Source: Entomortierella parvispora E1425 (taxonomy: Eukaryota > Fungi > Mortierellomycota). From it: a DNA stretch of 64,000 nt. Position numbers and translations under genes: made by a program. The stretch is taken from NCBI GenBank assembly GCA_020891255.1, contig BQFW01000008.1, positions 2,728,001 through 2,792,000 of the forward strand, written 5' to 3'. The notes beneath the pieces were generated by a model, which saw only the letters and a program-made list of their open reading frames with translations, did no database searches and had not been told where the DNA came from. This document shows, piece after piece, positions 17,960 through 29,894 of this stretch; the stretch's first letter is position 1, and every line of letters begins with the position of its first letter.

Positions 17960-19659
17960 CGACTCGTTCGTCCCCAGTCCTTTCATCCATTCACCAGTAT
18001 CACTGACGCCGTTGCATTCATTTTCTCTTCTGTATGTTTATTGTTCATTTGCATCGTATCAATATGAAAATATAAAAAATAAAAACTTGCCTCTAGACTT
18101 TTGGAAGCACAAAGAAAAAGAACACAAAGGTTAGTTTTTGTTGGCTTCACAAGCGTTGCCGCTTTTTTTTCTTTCGTTTCAAAGAAACAGAGGGAAAGGG
18201 GATGGATTTTCAGTTGGGTGCAATAACTATCAACACTGTGATTCAGGCGGTAATTCCAGCTTTAATTGCGTTTGTATCATCATAGTTGTCCGATGTAGGT
18301 TGGACAGTGGAAATTGGAGGGAAAGGGGAAATGGGCGAGCCATTGAATAAAAGGCAGAGAAACGACAGACTTACAAATTACATGTTCAAAACAGACAGGT
18401 TGGAAGAGATGTTGGATGGACAAAAGGAATTGGAAGGGCGGAAGGGTGGAGGAGTAAGGGAAAGAAGAAAACTCTGCCATCGATTCGCAATGCCACTTTT
18501 ATACCAAGACATGAAGACTGCGACAATAGAAAAACGCGTCCTCTTCATAGCGCTGTTGTGAGGCGTGACTTTTTGCCAATTGGCCGAACCCCCCAACTCA
18601 AAAAGAGCAGTGCAAAACCCAAAAAAATCCAACAAAAAAAAAATCCACAGACAAACAAGACGATAGCACGCGTCCCCGTTCGCAAAGGGGCACCGATTGG
18701 ATGCTGGGGGACCGGGCGAATAGAGGCCAGTGAAGGATACACAGAGAAGAAGAATAGACAGAGAGAAGATGGGGCAAACAATTCAGTTCAAAAATGCAAC
18801 AGCAAGAAGGAAGACGGACTATCGAATGGCTCGCAGCTCTCAGGTCGTCTAGACCAGTTATGCAAGCAGATATACCCGCGGAAGGGTATGTTATTTCAAG
18901 AAAGATGTCTGTGCCACCATCTCGCCCGCCATCAATTGGTCACAAACTGTTCGTGTCCGAACTTTGCGCTCTCTCCTCGCTCGTTCCTCCAATGCCTTTT
19001 CCATCTCTAACACAAAAAACCACCGAGTGAGCAGAAGCAAGGACCTATGTGGTTCCAACAACAACAGGAGATGTCGGCAGGGATAAATCTGACTTTGAAC
19101 ATCTATTGAACACAGGCCAAAACGCACACTAAGAAGCAGATGAAAAAAAGAAGACAAGGAATGGAAAAAAGATTGGGTGCATGGGCGTCGATCATGGACT
19201 CACTGACTTGCCCCCTGTTCTTATTCACTCCTCCTTGTGGCCAGCTGCAGCTGCACCTCTCAACGACCAACCAGCAGCGAGCAACCACTCTGAGCACGCA
19301 CAGAAAGAAGTGCAAGGCACACAGACAGTTCAAGGTATGGCGCCAAAAGTAGGCCAGGGACACAGAACAGAGATCAGAAAAAAACAAAACAGACCAGACA
19401 GGCACCGGTCCAACACCCGCGCGCTGCCAGTGGGATGGCATGGTCGTATCGACTTTCCCTCTTCCTCCCTTTCCCTTCAACCTCGCATCTCCTGCCTTCT
19501 CCCTCCATTCCTGTTCGCCATCGACATTCATCCCTCCATTCGTCTTGCTCATTCCCTTTTTGTTGTATTTTTGTTTTTGTTCTTTTCCTCTTCTTTCTTT
19601 TCTCCTCTACTCTTTCTTCCTTCCTCTCCCCGGCCTGTCTTAAAGAGTCCAAGGGCAAC

Positions 19660-22600
19660 ATGTCCTTCGCAGCCTCCGCTGCCATCGTCGGCCCCAACCT
19701 TTACGTCTACTATTACTCTTCTGCAAATACCACCGCTCCTCTGGGATCCCTATTCGCATACACTGCCCCCAATGCAACTTCGAATACACTGTTGTATACA
19801 GGACAGAGTCTCATCAACTCGGGGCCCAATCCTGTAAAATCTCCCACCAGTGCCTGGATGTTCCCTAATTCGAAAAACCAGTTGATCCTCCTCCTGAGTC
19901 AGTCATCGCCAACGATATTGTCATTGCAACCTCAGTCCCAGCCTCAGCCACTCGTCAACCAAGTTCCCTGGAACGAGACTGGCATCAACAATGTGAATTG
20001 GGCTGTTACAGATTTGTCCTCGGTGTCTGGACTCGTTCCCGCAGGCCTTTCACAACCGCAAATCTCGATTGCTTCAGGAAATTCAGGAACTTCAGAGGGC
20101 TCGGGGATGTATGAGCTTTACTCTGCTCTTGTGCAAACGGCTTCGCAGCTTTATATAACCAAATTAGATATCTCGAACGGTGGAGCCGGGGTGATATCCT
20201 TGTGGCCAAGGTCTATTGGAAATATTGATCCTACTTCGTCTCCACGAGTGGTTCGTCTGCCTGGAACCTCAACTATGGGTGTGGATGTAGTTGCAGTAGG
20301 AGGGTGCCCTCCTACTAACAGCTCAAATCCAGGAGGAACGTGCCTGAATTTTTTTGTCGACGGAACCTTTGGTAACGCGGTAAGCTCAGCGTGAGGAGAA
20401 ATGAGAAAAGGATGGAGAGAGCATGTGTCTGTGTGCAATGTGGTTTTTGCCACTGTACGTTTTGCCGCTTTGGAAGGTAGTCCTGAAGCTCTGAACCCAG
20501 CCCCTCTTTGCTCACTCCTTCACTTCAGAGGGGCTGGGCGCAAATCTCACCCTTTCCTATGGATGACCCAAAATAATTTTTTCGTCCAAAAAAGGAAAAA
20601 AAATTCTCTGATAAATAGTGTAATTTAAAAACTTTAAATAAATTCACTCTAATAATAATAAAATAGTGAGAGTAATGCCAGCCATGCAGCCATGCCATCG
20701 CTCGTCGCCCGGCTTGAATGGGGTTAATTTCTTCCATTTTTTCATTTTTCATCGCCACCACTTTCTTTCATAAACCCCGCGTTCCGATCTTGCATTCAGC
20801 TCCTGCCACCTCTTCTTTATACCCTTCATCTGATTAAATGACAAAGATGGCAAGCAAAAGACCAATCGAGCAGAGGTGAGGAGACGCGTCTCGGGTGTCC
20901 ATGATGCTCAGAGTCGCCCACGCGTCCATCTGCTCATTTTTCTTCATCTCTTCATATTTTCTGTTGTAGTCATGATGCTCTTAGCAAATCTGATCAAGAT
21001 ATCCCGGGAACGCCGAGAAGATCGCGTAGCACCAAGGTGAGTAGCTTGATGTGGTGCCTGGTGGCCTCTTCCTGGTGTGGCCTCTTCTAACTCTGTGATT
21101 TACAATAGGGTGAGGGACGATTTCGTCTTGATTCCCCAGGTGCTCCTCCGCGAACCCCGCAAACAACACAAACCCCACGAGCACCACGAGCACCACGAAC
21201 TCCACGAACCCCGCGCACCTCACAAACCTTACAAACGCCAAGATTCATACAGTCACCAATTGTGGCCAACCAAGTATGAAAAAAATCGTTAAAAAATATG
21301 TGCTGCTCGCGTTTTTCTTTTCTAACAGATGTATCCACCTCCTCCCATTCATATCGATTAGGGAACTACCAATGGTTCTGGTGCTACCGATATGGCCCAA
21401 CCTTTACCCTTTGTCATGGAGGCACAGGCTCTTTCTCCGACTTCTCAGGCTGCGTACATTGGAGGATCAACGCAATTCAACATTGGAAAAAATTCGACGC
21501 CACCCATCACTGGAGAAGAACCGCCACGACTCAATGTTGGAGAGAATTTGACGCGATCCAATGTTGGAGAAGAATCGCCGCGACCCAGCAATGCGTCGGA
21601 GGAGTTGACGTTCGATCCTTTCTGTGATAACACTGATGGAGAACCAATCATGACGTGGGGTTCTGATAACTATTATGTAAGAACCCCTTTGAGGAAAAAG
21701 TGGTCATCGATGCAGCCATCGTCATCAGCTCCTTCTTCACCCGCCAATTCTGTCGGCTCTCCGTTGCAGTCATTCTCGTCACCATCAAATGCGGTTCTTA
21801 GCCAACCTTTACCGTTTATACAAAAAAAGCGATGAACGCGAAGACGAGAGTGATGTCCAGGTAAGTCGAGTTTAATTATGAAATGGCGATGTTCTGGACT
21901 TGCATTAACTCTCACATTAAAATGCATATATGTCTGTAATCTTCATACTGCAGGATCCATTATGTAAAGAGGCTATTCAAGCTTGCCGAAAGCGTTTTCA
22001 TCACTCACCAAAGGAGGAGCAGCTTCGTGTTGTCAAACATATATACAACAAGCAGGATTGCTTACTGCTTGCGCCCTGCGGGTGGGGAAAAACACTTGTA
22101 TTTTCTCTGCCAATGGTGATGTGGAAGGACAAGATTACGGTCGTCATTTCGCCGTTGATTGCCCTGATGCAGGATCAGATAAAGGTATGCCAGCATACAA
22201 TATACCAGTCTAACAGGTATACTTTTTCTAACATATCGCGCAATGCGACCCTGTGTTAATACTCTAGAAACTCAAAGAAAAGGATGTCACTTGTTTGCTA
22301 CTCTCGACCTACAACGGCAATCGAGTTAACGACAGTGACATTAAATTAGTTAAGGAGGGACATTACAGAGCTGTGTTCATGTCGCCAGAAGTCATTTTCG
22401 GGAAAGGATCTACTGCATGCAAGGTTCAGGACCTTTGGAACAATAAGTATTGGAAAAGTCAACTATGCTCCATCGTCGTAGATGAAGTCCACTGTGTAGA
22501 TAAATGGAAAGATTTTCGGCCGTATTATTCGCAAATTGGATCATTGCGTGGTAAGGTACCTGGGGTGCCGATCGTAGGCCTGACTGCAACCCTCCCACCC

Positions 22601-25600
22601 GATTCGCTCCAGGAAATCAAGAATAGCGTCTTTCTCGCCTCGTCCACCGTTCATGTCATTCGTGTGGATGACATTCGTGATAACATCCAGCTCGAAGTTC
22701 ATACCTTTTCACTAAGGAATCGAGTCAGACAACTGGCGAAGTTGCTGGACAATACAAAGACGATTGTCTATTTTGACAGCATCGCACTTCTCAGAGATGT
22801 ACAGGACAAGTTAAGGCCATTGAGGCCTGATCTGCGAATGGACGCATTTTTCTCAACCCGCCTTAGTTCTTCCAAGGATAAAGTCCTGCTCAAGTTCATT
22901 AATAGCGAGATTGATGTCCTGTTGGCTACTGATGCCTGCGGCATGGGATGCGATATCTCAGATGTTATCACTGTGTTCCAATATGAGTAAGTTGAAACGT
23001 AACTAAGGTTGGACAATGCGGATGAAATGAGAGACGATCTTACTTACTTCAAGATATTTTCAATGATATGAAGTCTGCCTCACGATTTGACGAGTCTTGT
23101 GCAGAGGTTCGGTCGAGCAGCGAGGGGTCCTGGAACTAAAGGCTTTGGGATCCTCTTGGCGCCTCCAACTACCAGCAGGAAATACAACAAGAGACCTGAC
23201 ATCTTAAATTTCGTTGCCCCCCAATTGACAAGGACAAGGACAAGGAAAAGGACAAGGAAAAGGACAAGGACAACAGTCGGAGGAAATGTCGGTGGCATGT
23301 GGTGGATGAATATCTAGGGAACAAAATATCCTCTCGTACCAAATGTTGTGATGTATGTCTCGGTGAGTCTTGTCGCCGCAAGACGACCGAACTTACTGGT
23401 CAAATTGGGCCCGAACTGACTATACCAAAGGGGAAGAGCGCGGACAAAGATCAGGATGTAGGGAGGAACAGGTTATTGGAGTGGAGGAAGAACGAGTGCA
23501 AAAAATGGACAGGAGAAGAAGTGTCCTTCGTGGACTTCGAGCTTTGCGTTTTGCCCGATAAAGTACTCGCAAGGTTGTGCTACAAGCTCTTTGCGGCCAC
23601 CACTACTGAAATGGTGAGGTTGATAGCTGACAGCTGTGATTTTGTGCCAGTGGATTGCGATCATTTTGAAATGATCGCTGAGGTTGTGGCGAAAGCCCTG
23701 GGCGAGATAGAAAGTACGAAAAATGATCAAAATTCCTTGGTAGTCGAAGAATAGCCCATCAATTGACCGAGCCAAGATGACAAGGAGATGGAGTCACTGC
23801 TTGCATCTGATGACCCTGCACAACCAAACATTTACAGCCGGCCGGGCCATTTAACATCGCACGAGCCCAGGTCCCATTCATTCATTCTTCTTTAGTTAGT
23901 ATTATTATTGTCATAAAATATCATTCAGCTACAACATGGTCGTTGGCCTCGACTTCCTCCATATCCACAGTATCGTAGCTATCGCTTTTTCTGAGAAAAC
24001 ATGCTATAGCACTCTCTGCCATTTTGTGCGCGCCAACAGTTTGAAGGTCAACTACCACGGATGGAGAAGGCCGAGTGTCTTGCTTGGATGCCCAAAGGAT
24101 TCCACAGAACTGGAGATTGTCTCTGACAAGCTCAACATCCTCTTTCGTGGATGGTTTTTTGTGAGCAGTGCTGTTGTACTTGGTTTCTATCTCCCGTTCG
24201 AAATTACGTGCAATGGTTTGAAATATCTCGACGTTTGTTGAGATTTGTTCGCGAAGATAGTCCCAGCTTGCGTTTGGCCCTTTCGCTGCATGAGTGGCTT
24301 TGAGGAGGAAGTTGATGATTTCTTGGTACATGTCCGTTGGCATCCATGCTTGAGGAATGCCTTTAGGGTTCACCAGCATGCTTGAAAGGACCCTGTGTTC
24401 CCATTCACGCGTCCACAGGTGGCGCATGCCGTGGAGAAATCGTAGTAGCTCAAGGGCATATTTGGAATTGCCTCCGCCGTGCATCATCAATGCCACGGTT
24501 GGTAGCACACATCTTATCCGCCCAAGATCGCCAGCCTTAATAGCAGCAGAGAGTTCGATGAAAACGATCATGTCTCGGAGGAAGAGAAGAGCATTGATAT
24601 CTGCTGGAGTGCAGGGCCGGCCATTGAGCAAGGGATTGGCATGCTGCAGACTAGCTATGGCGTAAATGACAAGATCAACGAATCTTGTCATGTCAGACTC
24701 CACTGAGGTATGAAGATCTTCCCAGAGTACCATTGACATTGCGTCGAAAACAATCTTCAGCAGTTCACTGGTTGGCTTGTACTCCGGTTTATCCGTGTTA
24801 AAGCCTTTACTGGCCAATAGGGAAATGAATGATGCAAGTGAGCCTGGGGTATTGGCATCGGCGCCAAGATGTGTCTTGTAGATCGTGGAGCAAAGTGTCA
24901 TTTGGAGATGGAAGAGCTGAAACGTAGGATGTACCCAACCAAGACTGCCGAATGGATCCGACTCAACCATGCGGTGTACCTTGAGAGATAAAAGTCTAGA
25001 GACAGTCATCTGATCACCGGCCACTATGATGTCCCTGGTGGTCTTGCTGAACCATTCATCGCTTAAGCCGAGATCTATCTTTGTTATGTTTTCCAGCACT
25101 GCGAGATTTCCGGCAATAGTCGACTCATCGATCTTCATGGTTGGCAATGGAAAAGTTTTCGTCTTAACAACCTTCAGTACGTCAATGGCCGGCATGGGAA
25201 TCACGCAAACACTGGGTGATCGAGGCAAAAACTGCGAAATGGCAGTCGACAGATGTGTGCGGCAGGCAGCCCTAGTCATGGTGCGGTCGGTGCTTGTGGG
25301 GAAAAAAATGCTGGCGCTTGGCTCTGGCCTGTCCACTCTGAAGCAAACCATTGGGGATGATCGAGGTATTTCAGCACTCCTGGAGCTCCCGAGATTTGAG
25401 CTGTCGGGAATCAGAATCACGGTAGCAGCTGTGCCGTTGTCGAACGTGTCTCTTTTTCCTACTCTCTGGTGATGGTGCCTTGTGGCAATGTTGATGTTGT
25501 CGTATACAATGTAAAAGTCGTTGTTGAGGACTGCCACCTTCACCCTCTCCTGTGCGTCTTTGGTCAAGGCCTTCAATGCCCTGTGAATCTGATCATATGA

Positions 25601-28600
25601 CACGCAAAGTCCAAGAGCCGACAAAGTCTCTAAAACTCGTCTGGGAGCTCCCAGGCAGTGAAGATAGATGCCCATTACCATCTGAAAAGCATTGCATTGC
25701 TGGGATCTCAAGAACATGAGCATAGCAGAGATGCAGCCACGAACAGAGCTGGGTTTTTCGACCGCGCCTGCGAGCAGGTGTAGCGCTTCCCACAGTTTCT
25801 TCATCATTGTTGCCGATGTTGTCACTGCCGTTGTTGACGGTGTTATCGCCGTTGCTGTCGATGTCGTTGTCGCCGCTATTGTCGCTGTTGTCGCTGTTGC
25901 TCTCGGTGTCGTTCTCACTGTCGTTGCCGTTGTTGTTGCCTTCGTTTACTCTGGTGCTACCATCGCCACTGTTCGTACCATTTCCCTTGCTAAGCATGCC
26001 GTCCAAAAGTCGTGTCAAAAAAGAAGCTTCGCCGGCGTAAGAGTCGAGAAACCCGTTCCTGAGGATCTTATCGATATTTTCCTCCGACATTCTATTGTGC
26101 GGGAATCGGTAGGCTGGGTGTGGGCCATCGTCACCTACGACGCCGTTCTTGAGGCGATCAAGCTCCCGTTTAGTCCTTGAGACAACGACGTCTACAGCGC
26201 TGTTCACAAATGGGGCATCCCATTCTTTGATCTTGCGTAACTTTTGGCTCCAAATTTTGATAACGCGACGAGGACCGTCTTTGTGATAGAATTGATGAGT
26301 CCAGCGCTTGATGTTTTCATCTTGAGAGTTAAACAGCTTCTCGAAGAAGGCGGGAAGTGAAAGCTGTTGTTCCCTGATGTAGTTAAGAATCATTGCAACT
26401 TTGTGGGTAGAGGAATGCTAAAAAGAAAAATAATTGTTAGACGCCTGTGGGAGTGACATATTGCTGGTTTCTTTGGACAACCGGTCTTCACATACATGCG
26501 GCTTCCTTGTTGATCCGGGCATTCGATCCTCTCCATTGGTCGCTCTGAGTGTGGGGGAATCGGGCATGCACATCTATACGTAATTCGTAATTCACTTGAG
26601 AGGTAATTCATAAATTACGATAAGGATGTTTTCGAAACCATGTGCTGAATTTACCTGCAGTGTCGATGAGTTGAACTGCTCCTCCATGTCGGCCGTTAAA
26701 GTCCTAATCCTATCACTGAATTTCACTGCATGTTAGAAATTTGCGTAAACCTGGGGGCAACTAAAGTTGCGACAGGGTAGGCAGGTTGGGGTATCTCATG
26801 CTTACGCGAACTGAGGGGTGCTCAGATTCCTAGATCGTCGCGAGTTTTTTCTTGTGGGGGTCCTCATGTAATCGTTCCCAGAAACCCATATCATCGGCGT
26901 CTCTGTTCGATTACTTCCTAATCTCCGAAGCCAGAATGGGCTATCGAATGGCTCTCCATCAGTGTTGTCACAGAAAGGATCGAGCAGAGACTCCTCTGAC
27001 GCATGCTTGGGTCGCGGTGATTCATCTCCAATGCTGGGTCGCGGCGACTCTTTTCCAATGTTGGGTGGCGTCGAATTTTTTCCAATGTTGAATTGCGTTG
27101 ATCCTCCAATGTACGCAGCCTGAGAAGTCGGAGAAAGAGCCTGTGCCTCCATGACAAAGGGTAAAGGTTGGGCCATATCGGTAGCACCAGAACCATTGGT
27201 AGTTCCCTAATCGATATGAATGGGAGGAGGTGGATACATCTGTTAGAAAAGAAAACGCGAGCAGCACATATTTTTTAACGATTTTTTTCATACTTGGTTG
27301 GCCACAATTGGTGACTGTATGAATCTTGGCGTTTGTAAGGTTTGTGAGGTGCGCGGGGTTCGTGGAGTTCGTGGTGCTCGTGGTGCTCGTGGGGTTTGTG
27401 TTGTTTGCGGGGTTCGCGGAGGAGCACCTGGGGAATCAAGACGAAATCGTCCCTCACCCTATTGTAAATCACAGAGTTAGAAGAGGCCACACCAGGAAGA
27501 GGCCACCAGGCACCACATCAAGCTACTCACCTTGGTGCTACGCGATCTTCTCGGCGTTCCCGGGATATCTTGATCAGATTTGCTAAGAGCATCATGACTA
27601 CAACAGAAAATATGAAGAGATGAAGAAAAATAGAGCAGATGGACGCGTGGGCGACTCTGAGCATCATGGACACCCGAGACGCGTCTCCTCACCTCTGCTC
27701 GATTGGTCTTTTGCTTGCCATCTTTGTCATTTAATCAGATGAAGGGTATAAAGAAGAGGTGGCAGGAGCTGAATGCAAGATCGGAACGCGGGGTTTATGA
27801 AAGAAAGTGGTGGCATTGAAAATGAAAAAATGGAAGAAATTAACCCCATTCAAGCCGGGCGACGAGCGATGGCATGGCTGCATGGCTGGCATTACTCTCA
27901 CTATTTTATTATTATTAGAGTGAATTTATTTAAAGTTTTTAAATTACACTATTTATCAGAGAATTTTTTTTCCTTTTTTGGACGAAAAAATTATTTTGGG
28001 TCATCCATAGGAAAGGGTGAGATTTGCGCCCAGCCCCTCTGAAGTGAAGGAGTGAGCAAAGAGGGGCTGGGTTCAGAGCTTCGGTAGTCCTGGGAAATAT
28101 TCTACCGCCTAAGCTTGCACTGAATTTTCTCTTGACAGTTTACATCAGCACAAGCAAGTCCGCCATACGACTCGTCCAGTTGTCTCATAGGTAATTTCCG
28201 ATATGCACCGCTGAGGAAGAAGACGAGCAGGGTTTATTGACGATTAGCCTTCGTGGCTTTATTTCTGGATGTCCAGCCACTAGTTCGAGCAAACTGCTTG
28301 TAATGATTTCCAAGACGGGTACATGGACATTCAATTACGATGTCGAATCCGCCCAACTACAATCGACTCTTTGGAGCTCGGTTTCGAGCGTTTCTCAGGC
28401 AGGGATTTTGTCGTGTGGTATCAGTGGCACACAGCTGTTTGCTGTTTTTGGAGGTAAAAACGAACGATAGGATACGTAGAAAACATCTGAGTAGAGGTCA
28501 AAGTGAGGGAGGGTTGAAGCGATTCAAACAGTCTCCATACCAGCGTGCCCATTGTTTCTAATAGTCAGCCTATTCTTGTCGTGAAAACTATAGGCAGTGC

Positions 28601-29894
28601 TCAACCCACTATCAAGACTGCACAAATGACAGCAACATCTTGGACCTGGCAAACTCCTACTCTGACCCAGCCTTCGCTTCTGCCCTCGCCGCCACCGCCG
28701 CCTACAGGATCATCAGGTGATAGTGGTGGCGCCCCTGGTTCTGGTGGTAGTAATGGAAGCAACGGCAGTAGTACAAATCCTAACGACAGCTCATCTGGAA
28801 GTAAAACAGGTTTGGGCAAGGGTGCCATCATCGCAATCGCGATCGTCGCCGCCTTGCTCCTGATTCTCATCCCGATCCTGATCCTCTGGTGGTGCCGCCG
28901 CAAGCGCCAGAACGACAAGAAGTACGAGGAACGGACCGAGGAGCTCAAAAAGTCCATTGTGATGGATCAAGGCGGTGGAAAACGCATGGGCTCGTCCCTA
29001 CCTCTGCCCCGCGCGATTCCCCAAGTGCCCCCAAGGCATTCCCCTGTCACGTTCTACTTGGAGACCCCTGGGGCCACCCCTGCCCTCGGCGGTATGACCC
29101 TGATCGGCCATGACCGTAGCAGCCACTCGGGATCGTCTAGCATGCCGGGCTCGAGCACGATGAGCTATGACGAAAGGCTGTCAGTGCACCCGTCGCACCC
29201 TTCGATGCAGTCTCTGCCGTCGATACAGTCTCCCACGATGCAGTCTCCGCTACAAATGCAGGCTCAGCCATCGATCCAATCCTTGCCGCATCCTTACCAG
29301 CAGCCCTCCAGGACTTGGTCGCAGGATGGCGGCAGCGTGGCCAATGGCGGCTCACCTTCGCCCAGGACCTTGAACCCCTCCCCCCGGACCTTGAACCAGC
29401 AGCACCAGCACAGCTTCAGCGACAATGAAAGCACGGCGGGACCTGGGTCCGTTGATGGATACCATTCCGACGCGCGTCTGAGCCGTGGTGGTATCTATGA
29501 TGACAAGCATGAGATCATGAGCCCTGACCGAGACCCGTATGGACACCATGAGCGCTCGACCACGAGCATGAGCTACCTGAAGAGTCCTGCCTTGACCGAA
29601 TTGGAACACCCCCGCTCGACCACGACGATGAGCTACATGAAGAGTCCGGCCTTGACGGACTTGGAGCCGCCCATGCCCCTCATGTCCCCCATGTACTCGC
29701 CCCCCGCCCATTACCAACACTCGAGCACGGACAGCGCCGTCACGGCCAACTCGACGCTGGGCGCTCCTATGGTCCAGATGGCGACCAAGCCTAAACGCAT
29801 CCGGATGGAGGACATGGTCTCCCCAGGCCTCATCAACGCCCAATTGATCCTCCAGCAGTCGCAAAAGCCTCAGAAAGTGTCCAGCCTCCGTTAA
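19660..29894 (+). CDS. Single-pass membrane protein copy B, 749 aa (join 19660-20379, 28139-28190, 28277-28453, 28594-29894); transposon in intron 1
   Basis: Canonical GT-AG sites give an open 2250-nt frame: S/T/N-rich putative ectodomain, G/S linker, TM helix plus RRKR, and a long S/P-rich tail. Confidence 0.8.
20476..20484. repeat. 9-bp target-site duplication GGTAGTCCT (left)
   Basis: Identical 9-mer directly abuts both TIR ends (20476-20484 and 28083-28091). Confidence 0.95.
20485..21506 (+). repeat. Left terminal inverted repeat (1022 bp)
   Basis: Reverse complement of 27062-28082; the few differences found (near 20745-20755, 20935, 21315) are all outside the predicted exons. Confidence 0.95.
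20838..23754 (+). CDS. Transposon-encoded RecQ-like SF2 helicase, multi-exon, starting in the left TIR; two homopolymer frameshifts
   Basis: Motifs APCGWGKT (I), VISPLIALMQDQ (Ia), VDEVHC (II), LTATL (III), LLATDACGMGCD (V), QRFGRAAR (VI), and Zn-like CRWHVVDEYL..CCDVC. Frameshifts at A7 21822-21828 and C6 23217-23222. Confidence 0.85.
23921..27730 (-). CDS. Academ-type (DUF6589-like) DDE transposase, multi-exon, starting in the right TIR; one homopolymer frameshift
   Basis: Candidate catalytic motifs IVYDNINI, VAGDQMTV, FQLFHLQM, PTDMYQEIIN. ORFs 25593-26393 and 23921-25918 join by removing one base at T5 25754-25758 (RRRGRK-PSSVRG). Confidence 0.8.
27062..28082 (-). repeat. Right terminal inverted repeat (1021 bp)
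   Basis: Mirror ORFs in the track (e.g. 21077-21292 + vs 27275-27490 -) and direct base comparison. Confidence 0.95.
28083..28091. repeat. 9-bp target-site duplication GGTAGTCCT (right)
   Basis: Matches 20476-20484. Confidence 0.95.

Follow-up and report, generated by a model that had tools for sequence, protein, structure and literature searches.

AcademH is a lineage of the Academ superfamily of DNA transposons (Kojima 2020, Mobile DNA 11:15, as cited in PMC10045372 and PMC10799480). Its members encode a helicase and generate target-site duplications (TSDs) of 9–10 bp; for AcademX, TSDs of 3–4 bp are described (PMC10045372). Hosts of AcademH are found among the Basidiomycota, Ascomycota and Mucoromycota (PMC10799480), and Academ elements have expanded in bivalves (PMC10294476). 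Here we analyse a stretch of 64,000 nucleotides from Entomortierella parvispora E1425 (assembly GCA_020891255.1, contig BQFW01000008.1, positions 2,728,001 to 2,792,000 of the forward strand), called the window in the following. It contains an element with two genes between long terminal inverted repeats (TIRs), which is very probably an autonomous class II cut-and-paste transposon of AcademH type, judged by the published description of that group. The element is a member of a known transposon group and not a new system. To our knowledge, AcademH is among the least understood groups of eukaryotic DNA transposons, and we know of nobody who has shown the role of its helicase or the reason why its TSDs measure 9–10 bp instead of 3–4 bp.

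Results and discussion

The element comprises positions 20485–28082 of the window (7,598 bp) or, with its TSDs, 20476–28091. The 9-mer GGTAGTCCT stands at 20476–20484 and again at 28083–28091, in both cases directly abutting the end of a TIR. From 20485 the element reads GAAGCTCTGAACC, and it ends with GGTTCAGAGCTTC at 28082; the terminal motif GAAGCTCTGAACCCAGCCCC at 20485 has its exact complement at 28082, where it closes the element. A terminus of 30 nt occurs twice in the window, at these two ends, compared to 0 occurrences expected by chance. Repeat search, global alignment of the arms and the exon map place the near-identical core of the TIRs, 1,022 nt long, at 20485–21506 (plus strand) and 27062–28082 (minus strand). 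In the global alignment (20485–21506 against 28082–27062) the arms show 5 differences over 1,022 nt: a neighbouring pair of substitutions (20752–20753) and three 1-nt indels (20745, 20935/27632, 21312/27256). None of the five is coding, as they precede the ATG or fall within introns 1 and 3. A preliminary description of this locus had given the limits 20476–28091, a perfect 9-bp TSD and TIRs of about 1 kb that differ at a few non-coding positions only. The coordinates turned out to be exact, and the TSD and the TIRs are as described there.

A perfect palindrome with arms of 12 bp (CCCAGCCCCTCT and AGAGGGGCTGGG) and a spacer of 19 nt lies 11 nt inside the terminus of each TIR, at 20496–20538 and, mirrored in the right TIR, at 28029–28071. 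As single-stranded DNA this palindrome folds with z = -3.5. Its arms are identical in a related element of Podila verticillata (L016, 9606–9650), in which the spacer differs (19–21 nt). This putative structure, which comes without covariation, could be a candidate recognition site for the transposase or the helicase.

Further inward the similarity of the arms continues at about 75–93%, as far as approximately 21650 on the left and 26946 on the right. On the plus strand this diverged, coding continuation covers 21507–21650 in exon 4 (arms 74–93% complementary). Comparing 21507–21650 with 26946–27061, the TIR identity falls sharply within exon 4, from 99.5% to about 75–93%, and the two proteins stay homologous for about 65 residues beyond this drop (DPFCDNTDGEP, W.S.N.Y.RTP.RK). 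The drop points to a homogenisation confined to the outer 1,022 nt, or to a repeat that formerly extended further. Elsewhere in the window we found no solo TIR, non-autonomous derivative, second family or related fragments.

Gene models were obtained by splice-matching annotated proteins exactly to another copy of the element in the same genome (L003) and projecting the result onto the window. There are two convergent genes with seven exons each. The gene for the RecQ-like helicase extends over 20838–23754 on the plus strand (annotated proteins P0063 and P0064), with exons at 20838–20875, 20970–21036, 21109–21273, 21362–21860, 21954–22184, 22268–22986 and from 23074 onward; its conserved C-terminal domain reaches to the stop at 23754. 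The second gene, at 23921–27730 on the minus strand, encodes a putative Academ-type DDE transposase with the domain DUF6589. Its exons are 27730–27693, 27597–27531, 27458–27294, 27206–26806, 26715–26655, 26573–26496 and 26417–23921, and copy L003 provides an uninterrupted model of 1,101 amino acids (P0062). All 12 of the 12 introns have GT...AG borders and are 72–95 nt long (72–94 nt for the GT-AG introns of the helicase gene).

The transposase matches a single Pfam family, DUF6589 (PF20231, E = 1e-91), and profile comparison with solved structures and other Pfam families gave no sequence match at E up to 10. The core was modelled with AlphaFold2 (predicted local distance difference test 84, predicted template modelling score 0.87). 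In this model the core has the order beta1-beta2-beta3-alpha-beta4-alpha-beta5, followed by an all-alpha insertion and a helix. The best fold match is the hAT transposase Hermes (Foldseek probability 0.99; VIA Z 10.6 over 305 residues, root-mean-square deviation 7.5), followed by the P element transposase (Z 8.7, 280 residues); further matches are retroviral integrase cores (Z about 7.5), Tn5, ISCth4 (Z 7.1) and RAG1. Conservation was assessed in two alignments, A1 with 25 close and A2 with 44 distant relatives. Three acidic residues come out as candidate catalytic positions, all encoded on the minus strand: D576 of P0062 (25499–25501) in the motif VYDNINI on strand beta1, at least 90% conserved in A1 and A2; D738 (25013–25015) in AGDQMT just past beta4, invariant in both; and E969 (24320–24322) in DMYQEIINFLLK in the helix that follows the all-alpha insertion, with no exchange in A1 and a conservation of at least 90% in A2. 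The two aspartates are 162 residues apart, and 231 residues with the large alpha-helical insertion separate the second one from the glutamate. An RNase H-type fold together with a conserved D, D, E makes DUF6589 most likely a DDE transposase domain with an insertion domain. Upstream of the catalytic core, a conserved region (residues 275–332 of P0062) forms a confident four-helix unit in the model, for which no informative structural match was obtained (best Z 5.1, to an unrelated domain); this leaves a DNA-binding role unproven.

An exhaustive HMMER search for DUF6589 gave 1,767 clusters of representative proteins (E up to 1e-3). In the papers and supplements searched, DUF6589/PF20231 is nowhere assigned to a superfamily of transposable elements. 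At least one preprint (bioRxiv 10.1101/2025.10.24.684071) suggests that it may act in virulence or in epigenetic regulation.

The likeness to Hermes and the P element is one of fold, with sequence identity of about 10% and no Pfam or PDB sequence match. Elements of the hAT and P types have 8-bp TSDs and are not known to carry a helicase. Membership in hAT was rejected, the TSD being 9 bp and not 8 bp and a hAT Pfam match, including one to the C-terminal dimerisation domain, being absent.

A Mutator-like element (MuDR/MULE) has to be considered as well. Our element resembles maize MuDR in its TSD of 9 bp, in its long TIRs and in having a convergent pair of genes, which in MuDR are transcribed from the TIRs. 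The IS256-family transposase ISCth4 is also among the fold matches (Z 7.1). However, Pfam gave no MULE or Transposase_mut match at E up to 10, hAT and the P element rank above IS256 in fold similarity, and the D-D 162/D-E 231 spacing with an alpha insertion differs from the more compact core of MULE transposases. Moreover, the second gene of MuDR, mudrB, is not known to code for a helicase. We therefore regard a Mutator-like identity as very unlikely.

The product of the accessory gene is, by its sequence, a RecQ-family helicase. Its Pfam domains are DEAD and Helicase_C only, and its best PDB matches are WRN, RecQ and BLM (E = 1e-36 to 1e-30). Over the RecQ family as a whole (WRN, RecQ, BLM, RECQ1/4/5) E-values range from 1e-36 to 1e-19, compared to about 1e-10 for DEAD-box RNA helicases. 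Both RecA-like domains match, as in the cellular RecQ helicases WRN, BLM and bacterial RecQ. Behind the core, where RecQ proteins have their zinc-binding subdomains, the element helicase has a cysteine-rich segment (CCDVCLGESC); Pfam matches to RQC, HRDC or RecQ_Zn_bind were found neither in P0064 nor in the C-terminal open reading frame. Unlike in the cellular RecQs, its N-terminus is encoded by a TIR.

The combination of a DNA transposase and a RecQ helicase is also known from KolobokH, another fungal DNA-transposon lineage (PMC9587614). The termini of the element, 5'-GA...TC-3', fit the RR...YY rule of Kolobok, and one gene model from Actinomortierella fuses DUF6589 with a downstream helicase. 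In KolobokH the helicase is located downstream of the transposase domain (PMC9587614), unlike in the element studied here. Kolobok TSDs are TTAA-specific and 4 bp long (PMC9587614), but those of our element are 9 bp, all different, and none is based on TTAA. The KolobokH motifs (FDCSWSH, DGDLDSNKT, DLKH, NEAFN) are unrelated to the motifs of the element transposase, and DUF6589 motifs occur 0 times in the published Kolobok alignments (PMC9587614). TSD length and transposase motifs effectively refute that the element is KolobokH, a reading to which we give hardly more than a minimal probability.

The features of AcademH that were compared are all found at this locus. A DDE transposase and a superfamily 2 RecQ-like helicase are both inside one TIR-bounded unit; the TSD is 9 bp in eight of the nine copies described below and in the Podila verticillata relative; no XPG nuclease domain is present (Pfam: DUF6589; DEAD + Helicase_C); and the family occurs in fungi and animals (Mortierellaceae, Agaricomycetes, a bivalve). 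A low copy number is common to the element and AcademH. These results agree with the preliminary description, which had proposed a RecQ-like helicase (WRN, RecQ and BLM are indeed the best PDB matches), a transposase partner (a DDE enzyme by predicted fold and conserved residues) and the 9–10-bp TSD of AcademH, which fits PMC10045372. They also agree with its view of both genes as complete apart from homopolymer indels, since the genes are of full length and all three breaks are in homopolymers, and of a young insertion, as nine copies with 99.85–100% identity are the opposite of a single decayed copy.

The copies were searched for starting from the best protein match, EMPS_07069 of E. parvispora (100% identity), whose 90%-identity cluster contains seven different gene models of this genome. 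At least nine full-length copies exist, at nine different loci on five contigs of GCA_020891255.1, the copy in the window being L004. They are 7,593–7,600 bp long, 99.85–100% identical to the window's copy and have identical end nucleotides. Eight of the nine have a perfect 9-bp TSD, each different in sequence, and one (L006) has a TSD of 7 bp; no target-site consensus is evident among the nine. The alignment of the nine copies contains 21 variable columns, nearly all of them 1-base length differences in homopolymer runs, and the few substitution-like columns adjoin such runs. As the variable columns are almost all linked to homopolymers, there is no unambiguous base substitution over about 68 kb of copies. 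The E. parvispora genome is a Nanopore (GridION) assembly produced by means of SMARTdenovo, Nanopolish and Pilon (PMC8759367).

Could this near-identity have arisen by segmental duplication, gene conversion, or collapse or expansion in the assembly? It is true that long reads underlie the assembly and that homopolymer indels account for most of the differences between the copies. But all copies end at the same two nucleotides, lie next to different host genes on five contigs and have a TSD of their own, and no flanking homology beyond the TIR ends was seen between the nine. Exact ends, different loci and individual TSDs are a signature of transposition, and an origin of the copies by duplication or assembly can be practically dismissed. 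Judged by the identity of its copies, the transposon family is very young and looks recently active; it is a probably active AcademH family.

As assembled, the window's copy is frameshifted once in the transposase gene and twice in the helicase gene, each time in a homopolymer. The transposase gene contains an A5 run on the coding strand (a T-run on the plus strand) at 25754–25758, a +1 frameshift relative to the in-frame state A4. Five of the nine copies, including the window's, have A5 and four have A4. This run is the only difference of the window from L003 in the transposase coding sequence, and it splits the annotation into P0057 and P0060; the Podila orthologue aligns with the L003 transposase over its whole length without a change of frame. 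In the helicase gene (plus strand), an A7 run at 21822–21828 in exon 4, instead of A6, causes a +1 frameshift that is private to the window's copy (alignment column 6261), and a C6 run at 23217–23222, instead of C7, causes a -1 frameshift common to eight of the nine copies, the window's included. The C7 state exists only in L001, where it yields a helicase product of 799 amino acids. The C6 frameshift parts the helicase core from the conserved C-terminal domain. Helicases of Linnemannia and Gamsiella align across the C-run into 23281–23739; because these relatives continue past it, the cysteine-rich 150 C-terminal residues (CCDVCLGESC) are conserved and C6 is a frameshift. Errors in homopolymer length are to be expected for Nanopore chemistry and for multi-copy repeats, and the frameshifts of the window's copy are probably errors of this kind. 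An under-called C7 run is the simplest explanation for C6, and a real mutation shared by the copies is possible. If the frameshifts are real, the window's copy would need to be mobilised in trans by intact genes elsewhere, for instance the transposase of L003 and the helicase of L001.

Several points speak against our interpretation of the locus as a recently active AcademH element. The window's copy is, as assembled, frameshifted in both genes, and the 4:5 split of A4 and A5 among the copies may be a real polymorphism and not an error. Neither an empty site nor an excision footprint nor a second isolate was found for the window's insertion. With regard to the classification, no connection at the sequence level could be drawn from DUF6589 to a named Academ transposase, and among 44 long relatives (from the 150 best matches) none has an XPG fusion like that of AcademX. 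The latter two points, together with the Pfam entry of DUF6589 as a domain of unknown function and the typical nature of the XPG fusion for AcademX, would suit a helicase-carrying DDE lineage outside Academ, DUF6589 then being an unnamed superfamily that converged on the architecture and TSD length of AcademH. We consider this unlikely. A DDE transposase, a RecQ-like helicase and a TSD of 9–10 bp, in fungi and animals, are exactly the published definition of AcademH (PMC10045372), AcademH is known from Mucoromycota and Basidiomycota (PMC10799480), clades in which the family is abundant, and a distant homologue is present in a bivalve, a group with expanded Academ (PMC10294476). Architecture, TSD length, host range and the exclusion of rivals are thus our reasons to regard DUF6589 as the Academ transposase.

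A further property of this AcademH-type element concerns the beginnings of its two genes. Each ATG is 353 nt inside its element end, at 20838 for the helicase and at 27730 for the transposase. The left TIR holds the terminal motif, the helicase ATG, exons 1–3 and the start of exon 4, and presumably also promoter and 5' untranslated region; the right TIR holds the transposase ATG, exons 1–3 and the start of exon 4. Because each TIR contains the ATG, exons 1–3 and part of exon 4, transposase and helicase have identical N-termini: residues 1–138 are the same and homology is recognisable to about residue 205. Accordingly, residues 1–140 of the transposase retrieve annotated helicases at 100% identity. 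The shared 138 residues are of low complexity and basic; we infer that they are disordered and serve the localisation or the coupling of both proteins. One may go further and see in each 1-kb TIR a self-contained cassette of promoter, start codon and first exons, whose shared module couples the two enzymes. This is a tentative proposal, which we put forward with more doubt than confidence; for example, both could use one route of nuclear import, bind the same partner or be held by one tether at the ends of the transposon. If true, the cassette layout would make the two genes depend for their expression on two intact ends. In MuDR, only promoters and 5' untranslated regions are known to lie within the TIRs.

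The same layout occurs in Gamsiella multidivaricata (L015), where TIRs of about 820 nt have their ATGs at mirrored positions and encode a common N-terminus of 29 residues with an unrelated sequence. The recurrence of the layout with an unrelated peptide suggests that the architecture and not the sequence is kept. In the literature searched, which comprised texts other than Kojima 2020, we found no published description of TIR-encoded start codons and first exons, and the AcademH texts therein are silent on 1-kb TIRs of this kind. The TIR-encoded shared exons are the sole feature of the element that may be new.

Members of the DUF6589 family are spread through the Mortierellaceae, with distant ones in Agaricomycetes and one in a clam. 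The pairing of transposase and helicase was seen in Podila, Linnemannia, Gamsiella, Coprinopsis and Trametes; at the clam locus a helicase partner was not confirmed. The Podila verticillata element (L016) has convergent genes, a perfect TIR of 825 nt, the same terminus GAAGCTCTGAACCCAGCCCC as in E. parvispora and a 9-bp TSD, TCGAAAAGA. The element of Linnemannia gamsii (L014) has a perfect TIR of 250 nt. For the Linnemannia and Gamsiella elements no TSD was recognisable, the latter abutting another copy. In Coprinopsis cinerea and Trametes cingulata (L011, L013) the genes are in divergent orientation, and the Coprinopsis helicase is 29% identical to that of the element (E = 7e-25). TIRs were not detectable at the Coprinopsis, Trametes and clam loci, which are probably old copies.

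Two relatives show additional features. The Gamsiella region (L015, 8980–20911 of JALLKS010000069.1) contains three DUF6589 genes inside 12 kb, and a new terminal motif begins 10 nt past the end of one complete element; insertions seem to have accumulated here next to or inside one another. In Actinomortierella ambigua, a protein of 1,248 amino acids (P0211, KAF9969049.1, on an 8-kb contig) has DUF6589 followed by DEAD and Helicase_C, all encoded on one strand. Either two genes were wrongly merged in the annotation, or transposase and helicase are fused in this lineage. Furthermore, E. parvispora itself has a second helicase (P0087, EMPS_02081, on a 3.99 Mb contig) with 40% identity to that of the element, and its genome seems to hold several AcademH-like families.

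By annotation, the insertion in the window is intergenic, 82 bp downstream of a single-exon gene (244 amino acids) and about 535 bp upstream of the start of a gene for a membrane protein of 422 amino acids. A position inside a host intron was considered and has no backing in the annotation. Neither of the flanking genes (19435–20394 and 28545–29894) has a Pfam domain, and the downstream one (28545–29894) shows the signal of a single transmembrane segment. The host protein adjacent to the insertion is present only in the reference assembly. In the JGI metagenomes, no match was obtained either for the pre-insertion junction or for the terminal 23-mer of the element.

Conclusion

From these features the following mechanism can be proposed. 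The transposase would bind the conserved termini, that is GAAGCTCTGAACCCAGCCCC and the 12-bp palindrome, excise the element and, on insertion, cut the target with a 9-bp stagger. The helicase would assist as an accessory factor, either at the DNA ends or at the target. Promoters would reside in the TIRs, and the common N-terminus would give the transposase and the helicase the same localisation or the same partner.

An active AcademH element was not described in the literature searched. The family in E. parvispora gives defined termini, candidate catalytic residues and a gene structure, and it would assign a transposase function to Pfam DUF6589, contrary to the suggested roles in virulence or epigenetic regulation. 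The host is a soil fungus that can be cultured, and with at least nine essentially undiverged copies, whose genes look intact, the family is a practical start for transposition assays of helicase dependence. Its value is a practical one, as an experimental handle on the role of the helicase in AcademH.

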